DNA of 15,575 bases from Neoechinorhynchus agilis (lineage: Eukaryota > Animalia > Acanthocephala), in the NCBI GenBank assembly GCA_051530055.1, contig JBMGUZ010000065.1, positions 1-15,575 on the forward strand, in the 5' to 3' direction. Position 1 is the first letter of the stretch, and every line of letters begins with the position of its first letter. The translations under genes and the position numbers were made by a program. A model generated the notes under the pieces. That model was not told the DNA's origin, searched no databases, and saw nothing but the letters and a program-made list of their open reading frames with translations. Shown piece by piece: positions 1-15,575 of the stretch.

Positions 1-1003
1 GCTGTGACCGACTCGCTGGTAGATATGTAATATTCTGACCCGCAATAATTTCCTTCTTTTTAGCTTTTTTACCTTTGATTGCTGGATTTAATCTTCAAGT
101 TTCATTAATCTCCAACAATACCTTTGCTTCCAAATAAATTAATTTTACTCGACGTACACGAGTGCATTAATCAAATGTGTTATTATTACCCGGAACATGC
201 TGTTCGATTTTTTAAATTCTATTCAGACTCTACAGCTTGGAAAATAGAAATGATTGCCGTCTAATTGTTTAAAATTTTATTCCAATTTCACAACCAATAA
301 CATAGAAACGATTGCGGTCCAAAAACGGCATATCACTCAAATGTGGCATTTGCCTCGACGTATTACTTCTTAATTTGTTTTTAACTGCTTAAATTGACTA
401 AGGACAATCGAAAAGAATAACACGCGGTTGTGAGATTAATCGAAAATCCACCAACTTGTATTTTAAGCATTCTTTGTCGAGTTACAGGACTTGACGTCTT
501 TGGACGATCAAATTGACCGAAGGGATTTTTGCTTCCGTTTGTAGGTATTTTTAGGTAAACTGACCAAAGGCTGAAATCGGATTCTTCAAAAAAAATTACG
601 AATGTAATTAAGGATGCTTTTCAAAGAATAGAAGCGCTTCATTAGTTCATAATTTGATATATCCATGTTACAAGAAGGGTCCTGGTCAAGGTAATTGCCA
701 ATTTGTCTTATTCAAGGGCATTGTGCTTTAAATACTTCTAGGATTTCACAAAGATTCGTCTTAGCGGGTCCGTGTTTGCCGTTGCGTCCAGCACAAGTAG
801 AGCGCATCGATCGGCCTTAGTTGATGTAATGATCAAAAACAATGAATACTCGATGAACACGCAGGTACAAAGGCTGCGGCACCGAATGAATAATCAATGG
901 GGGGCCACAGGCGGCATTACATCAGGTTTGCGATCATAACGGACCTTGGGCCGACGACGACGGCTGCTGCTGTGAATATAATTTTTGTTTCTGATTTGTA
1001 GCT

Positions 1004-1024
1004 GTTGTTGTTGTTGTTGTTGTT
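1004..1024. repeat. (GTT)7 microsatellite just upstream of the zinc-finger start codon
   Basis: Seven perfect GTT units at 1004-1024, 25 nt before the ATG at 1050. Confidence 0.95.
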
Positions 1025-1049
1025 GGTAGCGGTGAATACTTATAAAAAG

Positions 1050-2661
1050 ATGGAACTATCGGCGATTACTCCCAAGCAAATCCACGCTGAGTTGAATGCG
1101 TACTTGGGTAAGTGTCTAGTTCGCGTGACATTTGACTCGATCTTTTAGCCATATCTTCTAATGAGTACTCGGATAATCGTTTAACCAGGGAAACCTCCAT
1201 TAAACCGGAGTCCGCACTCTCAAGTGGACAAAAGATTCAATGTCGACTGTATGAGTGCCATTATTGTCCGTACAAATCCAAATATCGGGCCGATGTATGC
1301 AAGCATCAAAGCAGAAAGCATAAGGACCAACCTAGAGTTGTATCTATCACGAGTCGAATAATGTGAGTACACCTTAAGAAAGGTTTAAACTTGAACAGGG
1401 TTGCTATCGTAGGGACACAACGGGCGCTAAATCAGTTCTGCCAACGCCTGCGATGTCGTCCATGAAAGTGCGACTGCCGGGTCCAAGGAGCCAACGAGCG
1501 GGTCGAATGGAGTGCGATATCTGTTTCAAGTTCGGGACTTATTCAACTGACAAATTCTATATCCACATGGCGGCACACCATAACCTCAAACCGTTCAAAT
1601 GTTCATTTTGTGGCCAAAGAGCGAACTATAAGTCGGACGTCCAAAAGCACATTCGGAACAGGAAAAAATACGAGCCACACGAAGCGGTTGTAGAGGTCTT
1701 ACCGGAGGAGGAAGCGAAGGCCACAATCGATATGTACATCCTGGAGAGACATCGTCACTCAAGCCACCGACGAAAACGTCAACCGTTTTGTGCGGGCGCG
1801 CTAGATAGATCCGCCGAGCTATCGCACCCGCAAAAGTTTATAAAGATGGAAAACGAGTCAGGTCATAAGGACATGTTCCAATTGAACCATTTGGTGGCCC
1901 AGTCTAAAGTGCCGATCGATGTTCCACGCTTTTATATTGGCGAACCAAATCTTCCATCCTCAATGCCCTTGATCAATCCATTGAAGCAGTTCAAATGCGC
2001 TAAATGCTTCTATCGCGGAGAAAGTCAGGAGTCAATGCGCCAACACATCGCACAGATTCATCAGTCGGTGGGCGTATTGAACGAGTCTTATCATGATTTG
2101 GGAAACAATACAGCCATGAACACGTTAAAATTATACGAGAGCACTTTCGGGACCATTTTGAACACTGAATCACTGTGTGGATTTATTCTCTATGAAAACC
2201 TCTCTTTCGACCAACTCTTGCAGCACATCGCTGGCCGCCTTTTGGAAATGAGACAAAAGGTGAATGCACACTCAAAAGGAAAACAAATTGAACAAATGTT
2301 CCTCGATTATTTCCGGATCTACACTGCCTACTACCCTGAGAGGTATGAGGGAATAATGGAAATCAGTCGACAAGTCGATGTCTTCATTCATTCGAACAAA
2401 AAGAAGACGCTCTCGAAATCGCATCTTAAGAAATCCAATACCGTGAAGCTTCAAAAAGACAATATTATTTGCTCTTTTTGCAAAGTGCGCATAGATTGTG
2501 CACTCGAGAATCAAGTGGATCATCTGGGATTGCATTTGCAAGGCGGAGCTGTCCGGTGCACATCATGCAATTATACTACCACCTTCTACAAGCTTGCGAT
2601 TCTCCACAACAACCGTGCCCACAGGGGAACCGCCAAGATGCAGGTACTTGATCCGCTGTAA
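1050..2661 (+). CDS. C2H2 zinc-finger protein, ~506 aa; exons 1050-1107, 1149-1362, 1413-2661
   Basis: ATG in context aaagATGg. Intron 1108-1148 (GTAAGT..TTTTAG, 41 nt) and intron 1363-1412 (GTGAGT..CGTAG, 50 nt) join the exons into 1521 nt = 507 codons, in frame with the 402-aa ORF. Fingers: CHYC-x12-HQSRKH (exon 2, 1250-1321, absent from the ORF track), CDIC-x13-HMAAH, CSFC-x12-H (last His missing), CAKC-x12-HIAQIH, CSFC-x13-HLGLH, CTSC-x12-HNNRAH. The splice model is inferred by hand. Confidence 0.8.
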
Positions 2662-2689
2662 TTTATTCGTTTTCCGATCTCGATCTCTG

Positions 2690-3365
2690 CTATTGATGAT
2701 TTGTTTTGCATGTTTGTTTATTTATAAACTGTTTACTTGTTTGACACAAAATCTTGAGATTATAGAACACGAGTGCGCCCCTGATTTGTACCAGGATTTT
2801 CTTCCATTTGTCAAAAAAACCTTCCACGCCACAATAACAATTCATAAACTAACCACACTCTAAAATTATCAGATAAATCGGGTTTTTTTGTATAGAAAAG
2901 CCAATAACGAATAAAACTATACCAATCGGGTAATCCGTTTCTAGATGAAACAATGTTGCCACTTAATTATTTACCTATTTTTCCAAGAAACACGTTGATT
3001 AGATCGGCGACCAGTTTTTCTAGCAATCGGTAATCGTCAAAGTGGATAAAACACAACAAGTGCGTTTTTATGGCACAAAAATTTGATGGATAACGAAATC
3101 GCGGTAAGGGGCTATAGTCCATAGTTTGATGCAGCAAATTACGGTCGATGGGTCTTTTCACAACAGCTAAAGAACATTATTTGTAGAAATAATAAACGTT
3201 CCAGGAAATGCGGCGGCTTAATTAACGACCAAGTTAAGAGTATTTGAATTGCTTTTTACAGAAATGGCCGGGTATATGATGAAGTCGTTTTGTTCCACAA
3301 GAGTTTTATTATCAAAAACTACTCTTAAATGCCTTCACGTGAAAGCCAATTGCCGCCTACGACAT
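2690..3365 (-). CDS. Tentative six-exon gene, 165-aa hypothetical protein
   Basis: Manual model with exons 3365-3361, 3323-3260, 3216-3198, 3166-2975, 2940-2854, 2820-2690. The five GT..AG introns are 37, 43, 31, 34 and 33 nt, and the spliced ORF is 498 nt from ATG to TAG. AATAAA lies at 2667-2662 just downstream. No recognisable domain, the last acceptor (GGAAG) is weak, and the model was built by eye. Confidence 0.3.
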
Positions 3366-3442
3366 TTTACTAAATTAAGGATTCTTTATTTTACAATGAA
3401 GAATGCAGAGAAATCCTCGCGATTGACAGCCAGCAAATCGCT

Positions 3443-6184
3443 TCAGTTGTCGACGAATTTGTTTAACGGTGAGCATTGCTCTATTTTATTTCTTATCAAT
3501 TGGCTCGCATTCCCAACTTTTACGGAATTGACCCAATGGTAATAAAGGGACTGGAAAGCAAGGGATAACGAAATTAAAGTAAGATCCGATCCACCATTCG
3601 TAACAAGATGTCGAAATGAGATAATGTCAGGCATCCTTGACAAAAGCGATGGATACGAGTAACATCCATAATTGATTGGGTCTAAAGGTAAGCCGAATTT
3701 TCGTTCATAAATGTGCATTATTTCATCTAGACAAAGTTCACTCGTAGGTTTAGAATATCCGGGCGGATAATTGTTCAGTCTGATCATATCATATCGCTCA
3801 TAGAAAATTGATAATATTGCCTTGGCGAACATAAGACACTTTGTGCCAGAAATGCGAACTGTATCAATCGATTTGAATGATGAAATTTTTATTGAGACTA
3901 ATTCGTCACCCAGACAAGAAGCGATATCACATAATCTGACCTGGACATTGAACTGATTTTTAACTCTAGATTGGAATTCGTATATATCGAGTTCTATTTG
4001 ATCTTCGTAATTGAGTTGGGTATCTAATAGGTCAATTATAGTTGATAGAAGAATACAGCGAATTCGACGGGGGCATATTTCTACATAGCCGTTACCAAGA
4101 ACACTCACATACTCCTTCATGTGTATCAACATATCAGAAAAATCAATGAATCCATAGGCATTGATGTCAAGTGCGTCAATCTCTTCCGAAAACCACAAAT
4201 GCTTCAAATCTGAAATGTTGGTCGAGTTTCGGCCGCCTCTAGAAACTAATTTGACTAGTTTAGCTCCCAGTACCAGTTTAAGGCCAGTTTGACTTACTGT
4301 AACCTGCTGTTCCATAGTAGCGAGACATTCTGATAACTGAATCAAGGAACAGTCGACATAGTCTAAAAGTAGATCAAAGTCGTATTCAAGATCTGTAAAA
4401 TCTGCAAATCGTTTCCCTAGCCTGTTGGCTAATTCGTTTAGTAAGTCATAACATCGAATTTGAAGTCCACCTTTGTCAATCATAATATTCAAAATATCAT
4501 TGGTTAAGTTAAGGCATTGTTTAGATTTAACGAATCTAAAGATTGTAGAAGACACTGATGTTGTGACTATCTTAAATTCTTTGGATGATCGAAGACAATA
4601 CAACAAATCAAGTATTGAGGTAACGCCGAAATCATATGGATCAAAAGCCTTTCCGATTAACAGCGTCCAATAATCGAGTAAAGTTTCAAGATTTATTGAC
4701 TCTTTGTTTGTCGATCTGAATATCCTTCTTAGAGACAATTGAAACCTTTGCATTTGAACGGTATGAGGCAATGTAAGGTATTGATCATTAAATGATCCGA
4801 TGACTTGTAAATACGCGGGCAATGATTGAAATAGTTCACTGATTTTTCGACATCCATAGTCGGCTACTCGTAGTTGTCTATGAAATCGACGGTGATAGGC
4901 GTTCAAAAACGTACACGCTGGTATCACACAGTGAGTTTCGTTCTCTAATATCTTCAAAATCTCACGCTCTAGTGTTGTCTTGGATTGAATTATCGTACAT
5001 AATGGTTTATTGTTCGATTGTCGATTAGATACTTCATACAACGATACTCTTTTTATTATCTGGTAGTCCGGAGAAAGGGTAGAAAAACCGGATCCGCATT
5101 TTTCTCCACATTGGGGGGTGTTGGTAGAATCAGACATGATAGTAACGCCCTCCACACAGCTAATGTAATGTTCCAAGCAAATGCCAGAAGATGCGTTCGT
5201 GATCAGTGGTTTAAATAAAGCATTATAGCAAGACACAAATCGAGATAAATCCACCGATCCGCCGTGTTGTTCCAACAATCTCCGAACGTTTCCACTGAAC
5301 GTGCTCAAAGACGGAGATTCAACCTTAACGGTAGCTTCCATTGGTGAGTATACAGTAGCACTACGACAATTGTCACAGGTAACTCGCAATTGTAAGGGTT
5401 GCCAATCAGATGGCTCAATATTGCTGACTTTTGCATCCGAATCCGAACCCCAAGTGTCACGCAATCTTACCGATATACCTCTATTTGTTGAACTAATAAC
5501 GTCAACTACCCGTGGAATCTTAAGCAACTCAGTGCTCGTTATATTATAATCAGTGAAATGCTGACGGTAAATATTGTTCAAATCCGTAAGCGTCATCTGA
5601 TCATGACCAGAAAGTAAGAAAGAGATCCTATCTTTCAGAAGCTCAAGATCTATTACATTACTTTGACGGCCGTTACGCTCAACATTGCGTGCCAATATAT
5701 GGATTTGTAGACGACGATATCCCACTTTTTTGTTATGAAATCTGCTTATGATTTGCATTGCATCAGATTCGTGAGCAACCGTGATAAATCCATTGAGTGA
5801 CTTTGTTCGATAAGTGCGTTCATTACTGTTCATCGGGTTGGAATCACGTAGTTCGATCTTGATGATGCTGGCTATCTGTGAGAAGCATTTGTGAAAATAT
5901 AGACTCCACTCTTCTCGACTCATTTTATAGTCCAGATTGGAAACATGTAGAACAACTGGTTCATATCGGTAAACAGATCTTTCCGAATAATCCCTAGTTC
6001 CAATGAACTCCTTAGTAATCGCAGTTTGTCTATTACCAGGTTCTTTGCGACCGCTCTTGGTTACTTTGAGCCCTGAAGTTCGGGTCCGGTTGAACATAAA
6101 GGGCAAATGTAGTGATTTGTCTAGTTTCCATATTCGACCATCGTACCTTTTTATTAGTATCGACCGCCTAACAAAAATCCACAA
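3443..6184 (-). CDS. MARF1: MARF1/Limkain-b1-like RNA-binding protein (one RRM + about 8 LOTUS/OST-HTH domains); 5' end unresolved
   Basis: 913-codon ORF; first in-frame ATG at 6097 gives 884 aa, and acceptor-like TTTTTAG lies just upstream of the ORF. The RRM (~5956-5696; VLHVSNLDYKMSREE..FHNKKVGYRRLQI) resembles MARF1 RRM2 (VQVSNIDYRLSRKE..LHRYKIGSKKILV). LOTUS repeats match MARF1 in order: FSGNVRRLLEQHGGSVDLSRFVSCY..GICLEHYISCVEGV; CVIPACTFLNAYHRRFHRQLRVADYG; FDPYDFGVTSILDLL; YERKFGLPLDPINYG. Confidence 0.9.
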   Translation of the reverse strand: MWIFVRRSILIKRYDGRIWKLDKSLHLPFMFNRTRTSGLKVTKSGRKEPGNRQTAITKEFIGTRDYSERSVYRYEPVVLHVSNLDYKMSREEWSLYFHKCFSQIASIIKIELRDSNPMNSNERTYRTKSLNGFITVAHESDAMQIISRFHNKKVGYRRLQIHILARNVERNGRQSNVIDLELLKDRISFLLSGHDQMTLTDLNNIYRQHFTDYNITSTELLKIPRVVDVISSTNRGISVRLRDTWGSDSDAKVSNIEPSDWQPLQLRVTCDNCRSATVYSPMEATVKVESPSLSTFSGNVRRLLEQHGGSVDLSRFVSCYNALFKPLITNASSGICLEHYISCVEGVTIMSDSTNTPQCGEKCGSGFSTLSPDYQIIKRVSLYEVSNRQSNNKPLCTIIQSKTTLEREILKILENETHCVIPACTFLNAYHRRFHRQLRVADYGCRKISELFQSLPAYLQVIGSFNDQYLTLPHTVQMQRFQLSLRRIFRSTNKESINLETLLDYWTLLIGKAFDPYDFGVTSILDLLYCLRSSKEFKIVTTSVSSTIFRFVKSKQCLNLTNDILNIMIDKGGLQIRCYDLLNELANRLGKRFADFTDLEYDFDLLLDYVDCSLIQLSECLATMEQQVTVSQTGLKLVLGAKLVKLVSRGGRNSTNISDLKHLWFSEEIDALDINAYGFIDFSDMLIHMKEYVSVLGNGYVEICPRRIRCILLSTIIDLLDTQLNYEDQIELDIYEFQSRVKNQFNVQVRLCDIASCLGDELVSIKISSFKSIDTVRISGTKCLMFAKAILSIFYERYDMIRLNNYPPGYSKPTSELCLDEIMHIYERKFGLPLDPINYGCYSYPSLLSRMPDIISFRHLVTNGGSDLTLISLSLAFQSLYYHWVNSVKVGNASQLIRNKIEQCSPLNKFVDN

Positions 6185-7109
6185 ACCCTAAAAACTAAAA
6201 GAGAATTTATTCAGCATATCGGGTATAAGTCAAGTATAAGTCAGTGCGATGGACAATGAGTATAAATTAGGAATGTGAGTAAGATGTCCAACGATTGCAC
6301 CGTTGCAGGCAAAGATCCTTCAGGAACCCAGCCCAGGATTTTGGTAGCAAATCAATGTGCCTGAAGAACTCTTGAATGAAGAGTGGCTTGTGTTCGGGAG
6401 GGCGACCTCTTGAGAAAAACACTAGGCTGGAAATGGCCCACGACTTCCAGATCGAACTCATTAGTCTACAAAATAGCCGCGGTTATTGATCACGCTGCTG
6501 TGCGGGTTTCGAAACATAATACGAATACCCCCCCCCAGCAAACTCTGACCACTCTTCTGTCCTCCCGTCTGGGATAAACGTAATTATAATATCTTTAATT
6601 TTATCAAATTGTTCAAATCTATGATTCACACCCTTCACTCTAACACCATTCGGATACGGGATCAGTTTCGGATAACCGAAAACACAATGTGATGTATACC
6701 GTTTTTAAGCAAGACTAAAGATATCAAAGTTCCTAATATGCGGCTTGAAGATGTCTTAAAGGTAAAATTAAGGATTAATTACACAATTTTAGCTTTATTG
6801 GGTAACATAACCATTTATTTGTCTTTCTACCATTGAATCCCATTATTTTTGCGCTACTAGATCTCCAATCGTCGGAAAGTTTTGAATTTCCAAAAATATA
6901 GAGCTGTGCAACAGATATTCTACATTATCCTTTCCTAAGACAATGCAATATTTCATGTTTTACCGAGAAACTCGACGGTCGGATAATCGACTTTCCACTG
7001 CATCTAGAAAAATGCTATTTATAAGAGTTATTCGTTGTTAGTATCAGCTCGATTGCGATTGCATTTTTCCTTTATGTCGCAACAGTGCGTTACTCGATTC
7101 AAGCGTCTC

Positions 7110-7260
7110 AGGCTACTTCACAGCATACGTGGATCCTCTGATTTTGATCGACTTGGCATTTTGATTGGAGATATCAACATAAATAGTGCTGGATCGAGCA
7201 CATTGAACTCTTACGATAACACTGACGCGTGGCTATCAAGCTTAAGCATTCCAAACCAAG
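7110..7260 (+). mobile_element. Probable fragment of an APE-type endonuclease from a non-LTR retrotransposon
   Basis: ILIGDININ at 7158-7184 resembles the hhxGDFNhN motif of LINE APE endonucleases. It is followed by WLSSLSIPNQV, weakly like the LxSxxLxNxV segment. Only one strong motif. Confidence 0.4.
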
Positions 7261-8167
7261 TGGAATACGAATGCAAAATCCGGCATAATAACGATGGTGG
7301 TTGTCAGAATGAAAACTACGATAACCTAAAACCGTATCTCAAACATTTGTGAGCATTCAATGGACACACCGTTGTTTTTCGTTTTTGTTTTCAGTTTAAA
7401 AAACGTTTTTGATGTGTTTGAAGAGCCATTTATTGATTAGCTTTTAAGCTTGGTACCTATGCTCCATCCCTTTTAAGACTCATTGAAGATGAACAAAACA
7501 TAAATAATAATGAAAAATACTTACACAAGTATCAGTGGATCCTTCAAGTATTTTTTACTTTAAATCAGACCATTGTCATGCTTACACGATCCTTGGATTT
7601 CATTTCCTCCCCAAAATCTTCATACTTTAAACGAGAATTGTATTTACGCAAACAAAATTGGATTTCAAGTGAGTATAAATATTGTTTTTAATAGGATCAA
7701 GCCCCTTGGGGTGCCCTAAATAATGAAAATTTTATTTCAGATATCAACAAGTTTATTGAATCTGTTGATGTTTAACGTGGCATCGTCTTAAGGTTTCAGC
7801 TCATGCTTACATGAACGCTGTGGCGAATGATGGAAACGTAGACGACATTGGGAAATCAGTGAGGTCAATATCCTATGACTTATATTAGACATTATGGATT
7901 TCCTGACTGATTACATTTACCTCCAATCCATCGTGAGTGGATAAGTTTTATTTTCAATGAGCCCTATAATTAATTTTTCTTCTTTTTATTTAATGTTCGT
8001 GCTTTAACATTTATTATCATTTTTCCATGTCAATGTCTCAACTCCTTTTTCGTGTAGATAAAAAATTCGAACCAGCGAGTAGGCAGGTAAATGCAGAGGT
8101 GGTGATAAGGTTAGAAAATATACGGTTTTCCAATTTCACCTAAACTTGGGTTTTTGCTTTCATAGTA

Positions 8168-8385
8168 ATATCGACGTCTTCTTAGCGATATTCACTAAGA
8201 AATAGATTTATATTGAAAATTTTCGGCCTTTTCGTTGGCCTTCTTCAGTCAGATTGCTTGTAAGTTTTCGAGTAACTCGAATATTTAAAAACTTACAAGA
8301 AATCTGACTGAAGAAGGCCAACGAAAAGGCCGATAGAAATTGAAACAATAATGATTAATTTCTTTACCTAAGGAAACGTCGATAT
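8168..8385. repeat. Nested inverted repeat (fold-back / MITE-like)
   Basis: Inner arms 8223-8268 and 8288-8333: 46 bp, one mismatch (8256/8300), 19-nt loop. Outer arms 8168-8185 and 8368-8385: 16/18 complementary. No target-site duplication seen, so the MITE label is inference. Confidence 0.9.
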
Positions 8386-9319
8386 CAACTGTCAAAATGA
8401 ATCATTATTAAATCTCATAAAAAAACGCTACTTAGATCGCAGCGAGTCTAAATCGGAGAGATCTAGAAAATAGATGCAATTCATTAATGGTAGCGACTAA
8501 CAATTGGCTAACTTTTAAAGCAAGATTAAAACCGGCGCTTAAATCAATGCAATACTGCCAATTCGGGATCTATAAGTTTCGGAATAAGATTTTGTGATAG
8601 TTGTGAAGTGAGGAGTTTGTACCTCTTCTTAAGGAAGTGGGGAGGCTACGGGTGGTAGACAAGGCTCAAGAATTGCTTGAATAATGGGAGCGAATCCGAT
8701 GAGGTGAAAAGATCAGCGAAAAATCCTACGATGGAATTTGCCAACTTTAAAAATATAATAGGGAGAAAATGATGCAGTCTGACGGGAAAAGAACTATTTT
8801 TTGAACATACAAAACAAACCAATTCTATTGCATATAAAAGACATGGAAACTCAGGAGTTTTAAGCAATGAAGAAAGCGGAACCAATGAGCATTAAAGTAT
8901 TGAATGAAGCAAGAGCGCCCGATGAAAGATACAAAGGAGAGTCCCTTAGTAAAATGGTTCAATCTCAAATATCGCCGGAAAAAATACGAGTGTCATTATA
9001 AACCATTACGATTGTGAACAAATAAGCGATCTTCAACAACGCAGACGAAAAAACAGGAGACAACTCTTCGAGCGACACGGGCCCTTCAACCCAACCGGAT
9101 ATTCTCAATCGAACGGGCGCATCCTCACCCGAACGAATCGTTCCCGAGTGGATAGTTCCTACCCGGATAGACATCCTTCCGACCAGATATTACCTCCCGA
9201 ACGGACATCCCTCGACTGCATATTCCCAGTGAGGACACATAATGATGCTCCGAACAATAGGTCTTTTGCAACAGGATTTAGGTCCTCTCCAGTCAGGCGG
9301 TCGACTAACCGAGAAAGTG

Positions 9320-10800
9320 CTCTTTCTAGAGAGAGCTGCTTCACCAGTGTCTCGAACCATTTGCAAAAGATGAGATGGCTTTTTTTAACTCTAAAATTTG
9401 AGTGGGTGTCCTGTTTTGTATGGGCGGAGGTGGAATTTCAAAACTGTCACTACTGCATGGGTGTTTTGACCGGAGTATTTGTAGTGTCGCGTTGTCTCGT
9501 TGTGCAAAACTGTCGGAGGATGACAATAACCGAACAGCCCCCGAACATCTTCGCCCGCAAGCTTCGAAGAAACACGTTCAGTCAGGGATTGCACGAGGCT
9601 CGCGAAATTTCATTTCGAAATTGTGAAATATCTGTTCGAAAGAGGCCACCCTTTCTTTACTTATTGATGTCAAGGACACACCAGAATTATCACTGGTGCA
9701 AAGGACTAAGCGCAGGAAAGCGAAGAACCGTGTCTATGATGGCATGCAGTGCTTTTGGAGGCAATCGTTGAGCAATCCCGTAAATGTTTTGGCGATCTTA
9801 TGTCGTGCGCCCCGTGGGATCCGTTTTAGGACGTTCTTGGGCAGAATCCGCACTATATCAGGTATCGAAATAGTCAGTAGTGATCTGAGAAGTCCCAGGC
9901 ATAAACAGATCGGTTGATTGTGGTGGAGAACCAGACTCGTTACAGCGGAAATCCCGGGGACCATGGGCAAACAAAACCCTGAAATTGGTTAATATAAAGA
10001 CTTATTGCAAACCGGACACACACCAGTAGACGCATGGGAGCTCGGCAGCGTAGGTCTTCTCAGGTTGAGCGCGTTCAAGGTGTCTGCGTCAATAGCGTCG
10101 ATTGTAGGCGGCATGAACGCAGTTCGCGGCTTGTTTTTAATCGAGATTTTCTTTGAGAACTGAGCCTTCGAGTTATCAGAATTTTATGGCGGTTGCATTG
10201 ATAGTTGGCTATTCTGTGATCCGGCCTCATAAAGTTCATATACCACAAACGATTAAGAGTAAATTTCGTCTTCGTTTACTTTAATGATCCTTCACTAAAG
10301 TGTTTGAAAGGAGTAATCAGGTTTAATGACTCGATCGAGATTATTTCATCTCAATACCCCACTTTCTCCTAGTATAATTCGACGACTTATTTGGATCTGT
10401 GCCTCAGGCCGAGAGCGTGATGGCTCAAGCCTTTGGTATAAACCCAATCAGTGGTTTATCTTCGCACGGACGATGATTTGATTATATGGAACTTCGAGCA
10501 CAACCAACTTTAGGTAAGCCGTTCAAGATCACTTCGGTAAACATCCATCTTTTTAACCCAGTCGTCAGATTGTGACCTAAACTTACACAAAAAGGCAAAT
10601 GATGAGAGCAAAAGAAATCGAAGACGCTGTTCCATCTAATTTCTGGTCATACTGGTTTAGAGTAGGGCACGATTCCAATTAGACTTCGATAAGAAACGGA
10701 TAACTTCCTTCGCTTGGTATTCCATACAAAGGGTTCCCCAAAGCGTTTTCTATCCTGGCGACAAGCGGCCGGTGGTTTATAAACGCTTCGTTTGTAGTGG
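9320..10800 (+). pseudogene. fem-1: Degraded Fem-1-like ankyrin-repeat gene relic
   Basis: Fem-1-like peptides are scattered across frames with stops and frameshifts: LHGCFD (9453-9470; cf LRAACFDG), HFEIVKYLFERG (9611-9646; ankyrin), VYDG..LEAI (~9732-9770), DVLGQNPHYIRYR (9830-9868; cf RILGPSHPDTSYYIRYR), GCIDSW (10191-10208; cf RCIxLW), PSIIRRLI (10368-10391), KTLFHL (10621-10638), IPYKGFPKAF (10719-10748; cf Fem-1 C-terminal IPYKGFIP..AF). Boundaries approximate. Confidence 0.55.
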
Positions 10801-11099
10801 ACATTCTAGAGATTGTAAGAAAAGCTTGATTTTTAACCGCGTAAACCTTGCGAGGGTAAAGGAAATCGAAGACGCTGTTCCATCTAATTTCTGGTCATAC
10901 TGGTTTAGAGTAGGGCACGATATCAATTAGACTTCGATAAGAAACGGATAACTTCCTTCGCTTCGTATTTCATACAAAGGGTTCCCCAAAGCGTTTTCTA
11001 CCCTGGCGACAAGCGGCCGGTGGGTTATAAACGCTTCGTTTGTAGTGGACATTCTAGAAATTGTAAGAAAAGCTTGATTGTTAAGCGCGTAAACCTTGC
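10614..11099. repeat. Tandem duplication of 238 bp (10614-10851 and 10862-11099)
   Basis: The two copies are separated by 10 nt and differ by 9 substitutions with no indels (~96% identity). Confidence 0.97.
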
Positions 11100-11309
11100 C
11101 GTATTAATTCAAGAGTGTCTGATATCATCCTAGATTAAAAATCTAAAAATAAGCATATACCAAGGAAGCATCCGCTCGTGTTGGTTTCATCTCCCGTTCA
11201 GAAATGGTCGGGTATCAACATATCTAAGCGAATCTTCTAAGTTAGACAAAAAAGTAAGAATATTTCTTCCCCAAGAGATGTTCGTCTCCCTGGAAATTCA
11301 GTCGGCACC

Positions 11310-11685
11310 AAATCGACGAATATCTTGATTGCTTTGGATATTTCAATAGCCCTTGATAATATTAACATATACTTTGATATAAAGATATCCTGAATAATAC
11401 TCTAAAATCCAAATTTTTCTATTCTTAAGATGACCTTGACAGAATTAAATATTTTCCGTCCTTGGAGTGCCCAGGGAACTCGTATTTCACCTATACTATT
11501 TGTTGGGCCAAACAATTTATGGTGTAGAATTATGGAGTATTCAAAGAAATCACATTATACGCCGATAGTGTAATTCAAGCCACATCACGGCAAGAGCTTG
11601 TTTATGATCGTTGCTTATTTTTTAAATAATCACCTACCTAAAATAAGGTTAAACTTTGATGCCAGAAAACTAAGTTCATTTTAAA
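11310..11685 (+). mobile_element. Degenerate reverse-transcriptase fragment of an APE-type LINE (CR1/Jockey-like; clade not resolved)
   Basis: RT motifs in the correct order: ILIALDISIALDNIN (11322-11366; cf LDxSKAFD), GV-QGTRISPILF (from 11464, with a 1-nt deletion in GVPQG), LYADS (11555-11569; cf YADD), NKVKL*CQKTKFIL (11642-11683; cf NxLxLNxxKT). Contains stops and deletions. Confidence 0.8.
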
Positions 11686-11839
11686 CTCTCGTTCCACTTT
11701 TTGGAAAACGTAAGATAAGAGAATTTTACAACCTCGATGAGGTAATCGTCCAAAATAGAAATTCCTGCGTAAACACTCACTAAAAACTCAAACATTAAAG
11801 ACGTTATGAAGAAACTCGAGAAATAGGTCAACTCGCCAT

Positions 11840-12800
11840 ACAAACTTAGCTGAATATTTAAAATGTAGTCGAGACACGCCTTCACAATGTCATCGAACTT
11901 CTTTAACTTATCGACTTGCTTGAAGGAAGCCGTACGCAGTTTATGAAGTAGTTTCGGGTTGAAGAGGGTATTCTTCGTCAGAAATAGAGCTTCGTGTGAC
12001 GAAAGTTCCCGGACTTTATCGCACAGCATCGTGGTGTTCGGGAGTAGATGGTCGATTTGATTTTCCACATTAGAATCAAAAACTTAGCTCCCTAGAAAAC
12101 TCAGCCCGTCTAGAGTGATCAATTCTAAACCGGGTGCCAGATTTCTAAAACCTTTGACGATTTCGCTCTGCGCTGATTCGTCCTCGATGTTCATTACCAA
12201 CAGTACGCATTTCCTTGTATTAAGCTCAACTCCCAATCTCGCAGTCTCCCTTACCAGTGTCTCCAGATCGCGCAGTAGTACGAAGGGTTCACCTCCGAGC
12301 GTAGCGTCATCCAGATACCAAGCGTTCAAGCTGGATGACGCTACGCTCGGAAGTGAACCCTTCGTACTACTGCGCGAAGCGTTCACCTCCGAGCGTAGCG
12401 TCATCCAGATACCAAGCGTTCAAGCTGGATGACGCTACGCTCGGAAGTGAACCCTTCGTACTACTGCGCGAAGGGTTCACCTCCGAGCGTAGCGTCATCC
12501 AGGTACCAAGCGTTAAAGCTGGAGAGAGGGCGCTATTGAATTCGCTGCAAGTGAGAAATCGATTGGACCGAGAGGGTCTCCCTGCTGTACTCCTCTTTCA
12601 AACCAAATGAGTTGTTCATTAAACAGCAAAGGAGGCTGGGTGCCGTATGCGTTGAGAAAATAAGGAAGAGCTTCTAATGCGTGACTTTTTGAGTGCCTCA
12701 AACAGAGCGGTACAGTTAATGGAATTGAAGGCATTTGTAAAGGCGCACCTCAAAATCACACAAGGCGTTGAACTATTGGTGATAAACTGCCGGAGCGTCC
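11840..12800 (-). mobile_element. CRE-like non-LTR retrotransposon, RT core and thumb, inactivated (fragment B)
   Basis: ILRCAFTNAFNS (NAFNS at 12735-12721; first catalytic Asp appears replaced by Ala), GVQQGDPLGP (from 12593), NAWYLDDATLGG, GVELNTRKC, FLGS* (stop at 12084-12086), then LSSHEALFL..PKLLHKLRTA..FDD..ILNIQLS. GVQQGDP + YLDD + this thumb is typical of CRE-like (RLE-type) elements. Two frameshifts, one stop and a 188-nt internal rearrangement. Confidence 0.85.
12268..12523. repeat. 94-bp tandem array of fold-back units inside the RT gene
   Basis: Period 94 (units start at 12281, 12375, 12469; about 2.6 copies). Arms 12268-12314 and 12331-12377 are reverse complements over 47 bp with one mismatch and a 16-nt loop; the structure is repeated 94 nt further on. 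Confidence 0.98.
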
Positions 12801-13310
12801 CGAGCGAAGCGAGGAGACGGCATCGGTGTCGTCGGTGAGCTGTACTGCGTCGTCGGAGAGAGTACCCACAGATGCCAGCGGGACCGAGTTCACCCAAGCA
12901 CCTGATTCTCTAGTGGAGACTGCCAACAACCTGGCACGGACAACGTCGTCGCTTGAATCTGATAAGAAAGAGAGCTTTGAACTCTTGCGACCAGAAGTCG
13001 ATATAACACAGATTGCTTTTGGCCATTCGCAGGTATTTGATCGGAGTTAGTCAGTGTCACCACTCACTGATTCCCTCTTCAAAATGCCTATCAAGACGAT
13101 ACGTATCTTTCAAAATGCGCTGAACTGCGCTTCTGCTTCCCTCATTGGAGTCGAAAAGTGCGGGCGGATGCCCAAACGGCCAGAAGATACAAGCAAAGAT
13201 GCTTGTCGCCATACTTCTTCTGACAGCTGGAAATTTAAAACTTGCTTGAGACGGTCTTTCAATCTGTCATCTATCTTGCGTAGCTGAACCTTGTGCTTGA
13301 AAAACGGACA
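12800..13310 (-). mobile_element. Second CRE-like fragment: post-RT region (fragment A)
   Basis: CPFFKHKVQLRKIDDRLKDRLKQVLNFQLSEEVWRQASLLVSSGRLGIR (LSEE..GIR at 13226-13164; cf LSDxxWxQAxLPxxxGGLGIR) and RARLLAVSTRESGAW (12938-12894; cf ARLLAxxxxESGAWL), ending SLRSG (cf SLRLG). Stops and frameshifts present. Weak RT-like traces may extend to ~13630. Confidence 0.7.
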
Positions 13311-14371
13311 ACGATGCTCTCTATGTCCTTCCTAATCAAATGGACATTGTTTGCGATTTTTATGGCTCGTTTGAAGATGTTTCCTGCAAACCTACAAAGC
13401 AGGTTGATAAAAGAGGCTTTGCTCATTGGCATGGAGGACACAGTTGAAAGGAAGAAGAGCAATCATGCTCTAAGACTTCCAACGAGGAATCTCCATGGGT
13501 CGTCCGCGCAGGGGATGAAACATCACCTCGGGAATCGACGGTCCAGCGCACCCGAGTCAAGGCAACCAACTTAGGTACCCCCACCACATCCATTTTTAGG
13601 TGCTTGAGAAGGAGGCTGGGGCTTTGAAAATTCGCAATGAAGAGTTCAATAAAGTTCGAGTGTGTTACAATTCGCCATTGAGAATAAGTTTTCATGTGAT
13701 TGGTTTATTAAAACTAAAGTATTTGTAATTTTATAATCTCATTGGATGGTGTAATTTTTAACAATTCTTTTAAAAATATACATTCGTATGAGATATTTCC
13801 CGAGATAACGGTGGGCTGGGTTCTACATGTTATTGTTTAATTTTTATGAATTTTTAGTACCTTTCCAGGTCGACAATCGAAGGCTCCTGAAGATTTTCTA
13901 TTAGTACGCAAAATGACTCAGACTACTTTGTTGCAATTTTTAGCTTCAATTCAGTATCATTAACCCCGTCTCCCGACGTATCGTTGATCTGTACGAAATG
14001 CAGTCGAAATGGAAATAACCCTTCAATCGTTCATCTTTGGCAATAACGTGGACAACATCTTCTATAAGCAGTTTCAATTACCACTGAATGATGAAAATGC
14101 TGCGCTTCATAAACTGTACTATCAAGTGGCTTAATTTCTAAAAGACCATATCAGTTTATTCGATTTCCACTCTACAGGACGATGCAACTCAAATTTTAAC
14201 GCCTATTTAACTAACCAGAAGGATAGTGGTTTGACGGTATACCAATTTATAAATTGAGCGTGGATGCGACGTCCAAATGACTTTGTACACAGGCGTTTTC
14301 AATCTATTAAGACAGGTTGATTTTTGCCGAAATTGAAAATTTCTTGATGATAATACGACTAAATACGAAAT

Positions 14372-15090
14372 TTACTTCCCTTTAATGGCAAACATTCCTG
14401 GGAACAACTTCCACCAGTCAATAACTTCAAAGAACTTATGAGCCTTTACCAGATCAGTTCCACTTTTTCCGCATCCATATCGCTTATCTGGATTGAGTTT
14501 CAATAGTCGACTTAAGAGATAGTTAAGCTCGGCTGAGAAATGGTCAGGAACTTTAAACCTTCCGGATTGAACTTTCGCCAAAATTCTCGCTTCATCTGAT
14601 GCCACAAAGGGCGTGTATGCTACATCGAGATCGTTGGCCAAAACCCCGAGTGCTCATCACTTTTGGAGCCATTTATTCAGCAGTTCCACAAGCATTCATC
14701 GTATTCCCGTTTAAGAAATTAGCGAATCCAAAGTCGCTTACTTTTACTTTGCCGTTGCCTTGGACCAAAATATTCTCAGGCTTTATTTCTCTGCGAGCAA
14801 CCTTAATCCGATGTAAATAATCAAAAACGACGACAATTTGAGCTATGATAAATCTATTTTATTCTTCACTAAATCGTCGTTTTGCACGCAAATGTTCATA
14901 CAAATCTCCGGTTGGCATTAATTTGATCACAATGTACAAAATGCTGTTATACTTATACGATCCCTAGAAATCCACAATATTTTAAAGAAATATATTACTC
15001 AGCATTGCCTTTTCGTCAACTGTTCGCTTTGTTTGTCTAGTTTGGAAGAAGTGGAGCATTTCATATATTTTTAACGCAAAATGATCGTGA
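14372..15090 (-). pseudogene. cAMP-dependent protein kinase catalytic subunit-like (AGC family) pseudogene
   Basis: [39 protein letters not shown] (14795-14772), DFG (14735-14727), CGTAE*MAPK, PF..KVQSGRFKVPDHFSAEL..LL..KRYG..HKFF..IDW. In-frame stops at 14984-14982, 14966-14964, 14861-14859 and 14675-14673, plus a frameshifting deletion of the DWW/helix-F segment. No introns seen. Confidence 0.9.
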
Positions 15091-15575
15091 TGTGAGGATC
15101 ATCAAAAACCTTCTTTGGATGGTCATTGAATGAAACAAAAAGAATCAATTTTTGTTTCGTCAGAGGGACGAAAACGAAAGAATGCTCAAGAAGTGGATTT
15201 TGATATCAAGATTTAATTTAAGTTAATTTTTGCGAGCTCGCTGATCTGTTGCCTTGCCTATGCGAGTAAATCAAATGTCGAGATGTTCAATGCGTTGCGG
15301 AAAGTTTTCTTGGGCAAATTAAAGTTTTGTCCATAGTTTTCTATACGAATATTTAATAGTCCAACTCAAATCAATTAACTTGCTAATTCGTTGCAATCGT
15401 GGTGTTAATATATATTGATTTATTGTGTTAATATGATTATCCATTTATCCCAAGATAATAATAAGATCCGCCAAAATTTGTGTTTTGAATTTTTCGATTT
15501 ACGTTTTTAAAGACTCATGGGACCCCATCCTTTTCGCCGCCAAACTCAGACCGATTTATCACCTTTGATTTGGCC

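Follow-up and report, generated by a model that had tools for sequence, protein, structure and literature searches.

A five-segment inverted array in a dead reverse-transcriptase fragment of Neoechinorhynchus agilis, probably formed by template switching and later duplication

Products of template switching in which segments follow each other in forward-inverted-forward order, with junctions at short inverted repeats, have been described in several settings (PMC4689423, PMC11293582, PMC5453318, PMC10710096). Sequential switching at short inverted repeats produces interstitial inverted triplications, as set out in PMC10766183, and the same class of triplication also appears in PMC4689423 and PMC11293582. 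Short-range template-switch mutations can create hairpins in one step (PMC5453318, PMC7954356, PMC10710096), and hairpins and new microRNA genes have been attributed to them (PMC10710096; bioRxiv 10.1101/2021.04.15.439925). Here we describe an array of this kind in Neoechinorhynchus agilis (Acanthocephala), a fish-parasitic thorny-headed worm with a draft genome of 46.2 Mb (PMC12690905). The analysed window is the entire unplaced scaffold JBMGUZ010000065.1 (15,575 bp, reversed; assembly GCA_051530055.1), and the array lies at positions 12268-12523, within a dead fragment of a reverse-transcriptase (RT) element. We consider, with moderate confidence, that the array is a real structural mutation, private to this one dead copy, which probably arose by DNA-level template switching during fork or repair synthesis and was later enlarged by duplication. 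As assembled, the array adds one more case to a known class of mutation.

Reading of the sequence, together with a repeat finder, resolved 12268-12523 into a forward-inverted-forward-inverted-forward array of a 55-nucleotide (nt) piece. Its parts are as follows.

12268-12280, plus strand: left flank, also copied into the inverted segments; b = TCG (12268-12270) plus the 10-nt s1 = CGCAGTAGTA
12281-12335, plus strand: forward copy F1, 55 nt; b' = CGA, M of 26 nt, a = TCCAG, s2 the 16-nt loop, a' = CTGGA; its minus strand encodes SSLNAWYLDDATLGGEPF
12331-12377, plus strand: inverted copy I1, 47 nt; reverse complement of 12268-12314, with CTGGA in common with F1 and CGA in common with F2; derived A at 12352
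12365-12377 and 12459-12471, plus strand: reverse complement of the left flank, TACTACTGCG plus CGA
12375-12429, plus strand: forward copy F2; loop changes A12409 and C12421 in common with F1, C12380 private
12425-12471, plus strand: inverted copy I2, identical to I1; A variant at 12446
12469-12523, plus strand: forward copy F3, continuous with the upstream RT coding sequence and the most ancestral-like of the three forward copies

In this notation the presumed ancestor is L-b-s1-b'-M-a-s2-a'-R, and the observed order is L-b-s1-b'-M-a-s2-[a'-rc(M)-b-rc(s1)-b']-M-a-s2-[a'-rc(M)-b-rc(s1)-b']-M-a-s2-a'-R. The repeated unit adds up to 16+5+26+3+10+3+26+5 = 94 nt, and three copies of it lie in register (12281-12374, 12375-12468 and 12469-12562, the last matching to 12523 only); Tandem Repeats Finder reported a period of 94 with 2.6 copies, 97% matches and 0% indels. 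At junction 1, CTGGA (12331-12335) is the reverse complement of TCCAG (12310-12314) with a 16-nt spacer, and at junction 2, CGA (12375-12377) is the reverse complement of TCG (12268-12270) with a 10-nt spacer. The inverted arms 12268-12314 and 12331-12377 are each 47 nt long and 98% complementary around a 16-nt loop, the additional inverted pairs given by the repeat finder being alternative registers of the same array. The YLDD codons of the RT occur on the minus strand at 12306-12317, 12400-12411 and 12494-12505, and KLDDATLGSEPFVLLRE is read twice in the translated frames of the plus strand. This final structure and its microhomologies are observed directly, and they agree with what a first reading of the letters (hereafter the original prediction) had described, namely the alternating layout, the YLDD codons three times on the minus strand with inverted copies twice on the plus strand, the switch points at TCCAG/CTGGA and CGA, and the same A variant in both inverted arms (12352 and 12446).

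We resampled the window 20 times with a first-order Markov model; with no more than one mismatch allowed, the longest hairpin arm measured 12-15 nt, compared to 47 nt observed, and RNA folding of 12250-12540 gave -190.3 kcal/mol for either strand (z about -18 versus shuffles). A chance origin of the array is excluded. The sole arm mismatch places plus-strand C12293 opposite A12352 and becomes a G-U pair in minus-strand, element-sense RNA; the original prediction was correct on this point, but the pair carries no weight, since any transition in a stem yields G-U on one of the two strands. An intrinsic hairpin of the ancestral single-copy segment was tried as the cause of the rearrangement and rejected, DNA folding being no better than for shuffles (z 0.2-0.5). 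Because the collapsed ancestral segment has no significant DNA structure, the switches would have relied on microhomology alone. The junction sequence had no match in the JGI metagenomes.

To reconstruct the array, we took F3 and the left flank as the ancestor and applied two switches (TCCAG/CTGGA and TCG/CGA) twice. This model predicts 12200-12600 at its exact length (401 nt) and without indels. Prediction and observed sequence disagree at seven positions, which represent four independent changes (12315 with 12409, 12327 with 12421, 12352 with 12446, and 12380 alone). Since the model reproduces the array, both junctions lie at short inverted repeats that pre-existed in the single-copy sequence; in the nearest paralogue, L003b, these repeats measure just 4 nt and 2 nt.

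An exhaustive search with the RT fragment returned 2888 relatives, 754 of them at E<=1e-10, and those scanned pass the Pfam RVT_1 profile. Two of the matches are annotated N. agilis proteins, KAL7672332.1 (57% identical) and KAL7673038.1 (54% identical), whose loci on chromosome CM121342.1 of the same assembly provided three further family copies. At the DNA level L003a is 66-72% identical to the window copy, L004 is 66-77% identical over most of its length, and L003b, the most complete, is about 80% identical. The original prediction had proposed a search of other family copies for the same rearrangement, and alignment found the array in none of these three. L003b has one uninterrupted forward segment, a layout that is directly visible and is the one expected of the ancestor. 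It also contains the 25-nt arm stretch TGGATGACGCTACGCTCGGAGGTGA in identical form, and the YLDD region proved to be the best conserved at the DNA level, in line with the earlier claim that the array falls in a highly conserved part of the family. Being absent from the three other copies, the array is private to the window copy and derived, and is no property of the family. Both remaining paralogues have deletions here: L004 (L004 3001-3402) lacks 11 nt inside the forward segment, and L003a (L003 3001-3510) lacks 55 nt, almost exactly the segment that is repeated in the window, and the remnants are annotated as hypothetical proteins (KAL7672332.1 for L004 and KAL7673038.1 for L003a). These deletions of the amplified segment may be coincidence, given the many indels, or may reflect recurrent breakpoints. 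A mutational hot spot in the YLDD segment was not adopted as an explanation; L003a and L004 have an indel every ~40-70 nt, and the deletion ends are ambiguous by a few bases.

The variants within the array, polarised with the paralogues, have an order that can be read directly. F3 is ancestral-like, carrying TTT, and TAC as in L003b. F1 and F2 have in common TTG, clearly a derived state, and TAT, whose polarity is ambiguous because L004 has it too; I1 and I2 have one derived A in common, and F2 has one private derived change. Since the changes in F1 and F2 are absent from F3, the 94-nt unit appears to have been duplicated after substitutions had occurred in a forward-inverted-forward precursor; alternatively, the likeness of F1 and F2 may be due to homogenisation by gene conversion. 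These variants point to an array built in two or more temporally separate steps. Neither one processive zigzag nor one chimeric molecule fits well, because either would give identical copies. This variant order is the chief argument on the age of the structure, and it points to a forward-inverted-forward core that is real and of some age.

From these data we infer the following behaviour of the polymerase and order of events. A DNA polymerase would leave its template at CTGGA, re-anneal to the complementary TCCAG close by, carried by the nascent strand or by the opposite template, and copy 47 nt backwards. It would then return to the original template at CGA/TCG, upstream of its point of departure, and the product would be a miniature forward-inverted-forward inverted triplication with a net gain of 94 nt. 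Once substitutions had accrued, slippage or unequal exchange involving the two direct copies could supply an extra 94-nt unit, as could a repeat of both switches at the points already used. The fit of the model, the layout of L003b and the variants in common between F1 and F2 and between I1 and I2 all support what the original prediction had put forward, template switching at microhomology followed by tandem duplication of the 94-nt unit. The resulting array is most likely neutral junk, in a region that abounds in rearrangements and element fragments.

Compared with inverted triplications and the products of origin-dependent inverted-repeat amplification (ODIRA), the array is alike in its forward-inverted-forward order, in having its junctions at short inverted repeats (5 nt and 3 nt) and in having lost no sequence. 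It differs in scale, 55 nt versus kilobases to megabases, which leaves no possibility of a replication origin inside the unit, in the extra unit that brings it to five segments, and in being a germline pseudogene rather than a selected amplification. The array is thus mechanistically ODIRA-like but no ODIRA amplicon in the strict sense. Four-point template-switch mutations (PMC5453318, PMC7954356) resemble it in switching locally, within tens of bases and back, to give a near-perfect hairpin in one step, but here the return lies upstream of the departure, which adds a direct duplication, and the whole event is repeated. The array can be described by the four points of that model, the ancestral state being displayed by a paralogue, L003b, rather than by an orthologous empty site, and the second unit needing a further step. 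Relative to microRNA genes born by template switching, the stem of 47 bp is about twice the length of a microRNA stem.

Other systems share single features with the array. Young plant MIR genes derive from inverted duplication of their targets, and the array resembles these genes and the hairpin-RNA loci of Drosophila in being an inverted duplicate of a potential target; in those loci the arms run to hundreds of bases, and transcripts and phased small RNAs are documented, whereas the arm here is 47 nt. Short inverted duplications primed by fold-back likewise involve microhomology priming by a folded-back 3' end, but they are tied to breaks and usually have one inverted junction, whereas the array has two junction types, a return to the forward template and flanks that are intact apart from a 5-nt deletion. 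The 5' inversions of LINE-1 arise by twin priming and are similar in placing an inverted segment, with junction microhomology, inside a non-long-terminal-repeat (non-LTR) copy; twin priming inverts the 5' part once and duplicates nothing, in contrast to a forward-inverted-forward structure in the middle of the RT domain.

The element that carries the array is represented in the window by several pieces, all read on the minus strand, and by one small lesion next to the array.

11679-12749, minus strand: dead RT fragment, from motif 4 through YLDD to the thumb (PKLLHKLRTA), with an in-frame stop at 12084-12086; evidence from a sub-cut-off RVT_1 match and from its relatives
12520-12527, no strand assigned: site of the 5-nt deletion, plus-strand ATGGA lost between TGGA direct repeats relative to three paralogues; adjoins a'
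12759-13331, minus strand: post-RT, C-terminal-type fragment of the same family (WRQASL..GRLGIR; ARLLA..SGAW), upstream of the RT fragment and out of canonical order
9229-9577, minus strand: N-terminal-type fragment (AVRLLSS..KHP), downstream of the RT fragment and out of canonical order; matches L003 6507-6254

The RT fragment reads ...FERGVQQGDPLGP..., NAWYLDDATLGG..., ...PKLLHKLRTA and contains the QQGDPLGP and YLDD motifs. When joined across the array it matched Pfam RVT_1 at E=4.6e-6 with 26.9 bits, below the curated cut-off of 29.6, and it is 32% identical to the relative P0001, which itself passes RVT_1. No sequence match was found among solved structures. In the long relatives P0019, P0038, P0115 and P0151, RVT_1 is preceded by an N-terminal PHD finger or OTU protease and followed by a C-terminal ubiquitin hydrolase (UCH) domain; Pfam detected neither an endonuclease nor an integrase in them, and no endonuclease domain was found for the window element. 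Because RVT_1 occurs in the long relatives without integrase and together with PHD, OTU or UCH domains, the host of the array appears to be a non-LTR-type RT element, not placed in a named clade.

This copy is dead independently of the array, through the 5-nt deletion, the in-frame stop, truncation and reordering. At the deletion site the alignment gives TCCAT in all three paralogues, and the loss puts QQGDPLGP (motif 4) and NAWYLDD in different frames, even after in silico collapse of the array. The original prediction held that the 188-nt gain breaks the frame; the shift is real (188 mod 3 = 2), but the frame was already broken beside the array by this deletion. In P0001 and L003b the canonical order is N-terminal, RT, thumb, WRQA..., ARLLA...SGAW, whereas in the window the same-orientation fragments follow each other as C-terminal, RT/thumb, N-terminal. 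In canonical terms the thumb fragment ends, and the C-terminal fragment starts, near the same point (L003 about 5324-5351), which suggests that segments were swapped or that partial copies lie in tandem. A 248-nt unit is tandemly doubled with 95% identity at 10604-11099, in the interval that separates the RT fragment from the N-terminal-type one.

The genome was assembled from Illumina PE150 and Nanopore R9.4 reads, mainly from a pool of ~50 worms and with very little HiFi, using a MaSuRCA hybrid approach with a Flye step, followed by purge_dups, Hi-C scaffolding and TGS-GapCloser (PMC12690905). Public data for the species also include two small-RNA libraries (PRJNA1127840), 74 directional RNA-seq libraries (PRJNA1223661), PCR-free Illumina libraries and older gDNA reads (PRJNA1126620). 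We compared the scaffold to a 22.6-kb locus (L001) of chromosome CM121343.1 (7.8 Mb). Window positions 1-6878 match L001 9222-16097 with 99.81% identity (11 mismatches, 1 gap), and past ~6.9 kb the identity falls off gradually, with no abrupt join. Position 1 of the window meets an N-gap in the chromosome (L001 16098-16120), and past the gap the chromosome continues as a 112-nt satellite array (L001 about 16020-22655). We interpret the scaffold as a probable uncollapsed haplotype or subterminal duplicate. Its base quality is good, as judged from the match of the left 6.9 kb to the chromosome and from the zero indels among the array copies.

The duplicated stretch 1-6878 includes ZnF and MARF1-like genes. 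An open reading frame (ORF) of 913 amino acids (aa) at 3443-6184 on the minus strand has OST-HTH/LOTUS domains of the MARF1 type, and its annotated product of 884 aa is present both on CM121343.1 and on JBMGUZ010000065.1. Exact-protein look-ups with the array-spanning ORFs, the 913-aa ORF and a 92-aa ORF past the divergence point gave no match, a result that is uninformative, as element fragments are not annotated as genes. At 14375-14858, on the minus strand, two exon-like protein kinase pieces (Pfam Pkinase, E=1.9e-14; no gene annotated) carry ARREIKPEN in place of the usual HRDLKPEN, their closest database relative is 38% identical, and they may belong to a pseudokinase or pseudogene. When these kinase exons were used to seek a second assembled copy of the right half of the scaffold, just one distant match of 38% was obtained.

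Several points count against a genuine product of DNA-level switching. The scaffold is unplaced and comes from a hybrid short-read and Nanopore assembly of pooled worms, and the 94-nt period and the number of units cannot be counted by 150-nt reads alone. Positions 6879-15575, array included, have no counterpart in the 22.6 kb of chromosomal locus compared. This same non-chromosomal part holds a second, unrelated near-perfect hairpin of almost the same size as that of the array (arms 8223-8268 and 8288-8333, 46 nt, one mismatch, 19-nt loop), and no hairpin with arms of at least 40 nt occurs in 35.6 kb of chromosomal loci. The second hairpin has no Rfam match and no counterpart in L001, and could reflect the same mutational process or a technical cause. 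In addition, the variants may in part be allelic differences misplaced among repeat copies, and the sequence does not set DNA replication or repair apart from template jumping by an RT. One alternative is that the inverted segments, or at least the second 94-nt unit, are absent from the worm genome, having come from fold-back chimeric molecules or from an assembler that went twice round a looped graph; a scaffold that duplicates 6.9 kb of CM121343.1 at 99.81% and then diverges is in keeping with such an origin. We regard this artefact as unlikely, although it deserves to be taken seriously, and it bears particularly on copy number. The copies are non-identical, and the two changes of F1 and F2 versus F3 and the one derived change of I1 and I2 resemble a history; they have no indels among them, unlike raw Nanopore error; and the scaffold departs from the chromosome gradually rather than at a sharp chimeric join. 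The genome paper mentions no whole-genome amplification and gives a high read depth (PMC12690905). Alternatively, the array could have been made at insertion by the RT of the element itself, through snap-back of the complementary DNA (cDNA) at CTGGA/TCCAG, self-copying and a jump back to the RNA at CGA. The geometry fits this route equally well, the first-strand cDNA corresponding to the window plus strand and running from low to high coordinates. Template jumping and self-priming are established behaviours of RTs, the array is private to one copy, and the divergence of the array copies (about 2-4%) is not clearly below the decay of the fragment, which has one stop and one frameshift in ~1.07 kb. 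Nevertheless, the changes in F1 and F2 that are absent from F3 need a later duplication or gene conversion regardless, and we know of no documented precedent for an RT that zigzags back to its RNA template twice at identical positions. We therefore think an RT origin quite improbable.

Template switching plus duplication, as favoured here, leaves aside what the array might do. The headline of the original prediction was a self-silencing hairpin locus, in which the array is transcribed, folds into a 47-bp double-stranded RNA and is diced, with small RNAs repressing related elements in trans. RNA from either strand, if transcribed, would form one or two 47-bp hairpins, and the stable folding of both strands (-190 kcal/mol, z about -18) is a measure of potential only. 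The 25-nt arm stretch identical in L003b makes a trans target conceivable, and as the element fragments and flanking genes are all on the minus strand, read-through sense transcripts would be possible. N. agilis has microRNAs, PIWI and PIWI-interacting RNAs (piRNAs) with a ping-pong signature, and lacks an RNA-dependent RNA polymerase (RdRP) (PMC12256650); small-RNA pathways thus do operate in this worm. Against this, the array is found in one dead copy of the four examined, and the other family copies are decayed (66-81% identity, indels, two with deletions in the array segment), which leaves the family without a known active target. The 47-bp stem is far shorter than the arms of characterised hairpin-RNA loci, which usually measure hundreds of nt. 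The pairing has no compensatory change or other sign of selection, the strand of the G-U pair being an even chance; the window matches no Rfam family, and ARAGORN found no transfer RNA in it. With a 47-bp stem in an array private to a single dead copy, the silencing headline is unsupported, and we consider such a function very improbable. It would be equally far-fetched, at present, to see in the array a newborn hairpin-RNA gene, a putative source of small interfering RNAs or a piRNA seed directed at the YLDD stretch of the RT family. On that reading, to which we give hardly any credence, the gene would have been born in a cluster of same-orientation element fragments downstream of a kinase-like gene, in an animal lineage without RdRP. 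If it were true, a transposon-silencing trigger would have been caught arising by template switching.

The array draws attention to a part of the N. agilis draft assembly that may be of doubtful quality or prone to rearrangement, and the importance of the array would rise only if small RNAs derive from it. If real, it would be a clean small-scale case in which two microhomology-guided switches and a duplication built a near-perfect hairpin array. The paralogue gives the state before the event and the internal variants order the steps, which may be of modest interest for studies of mutation mechanisms and of the birth of hairpin RNAs.

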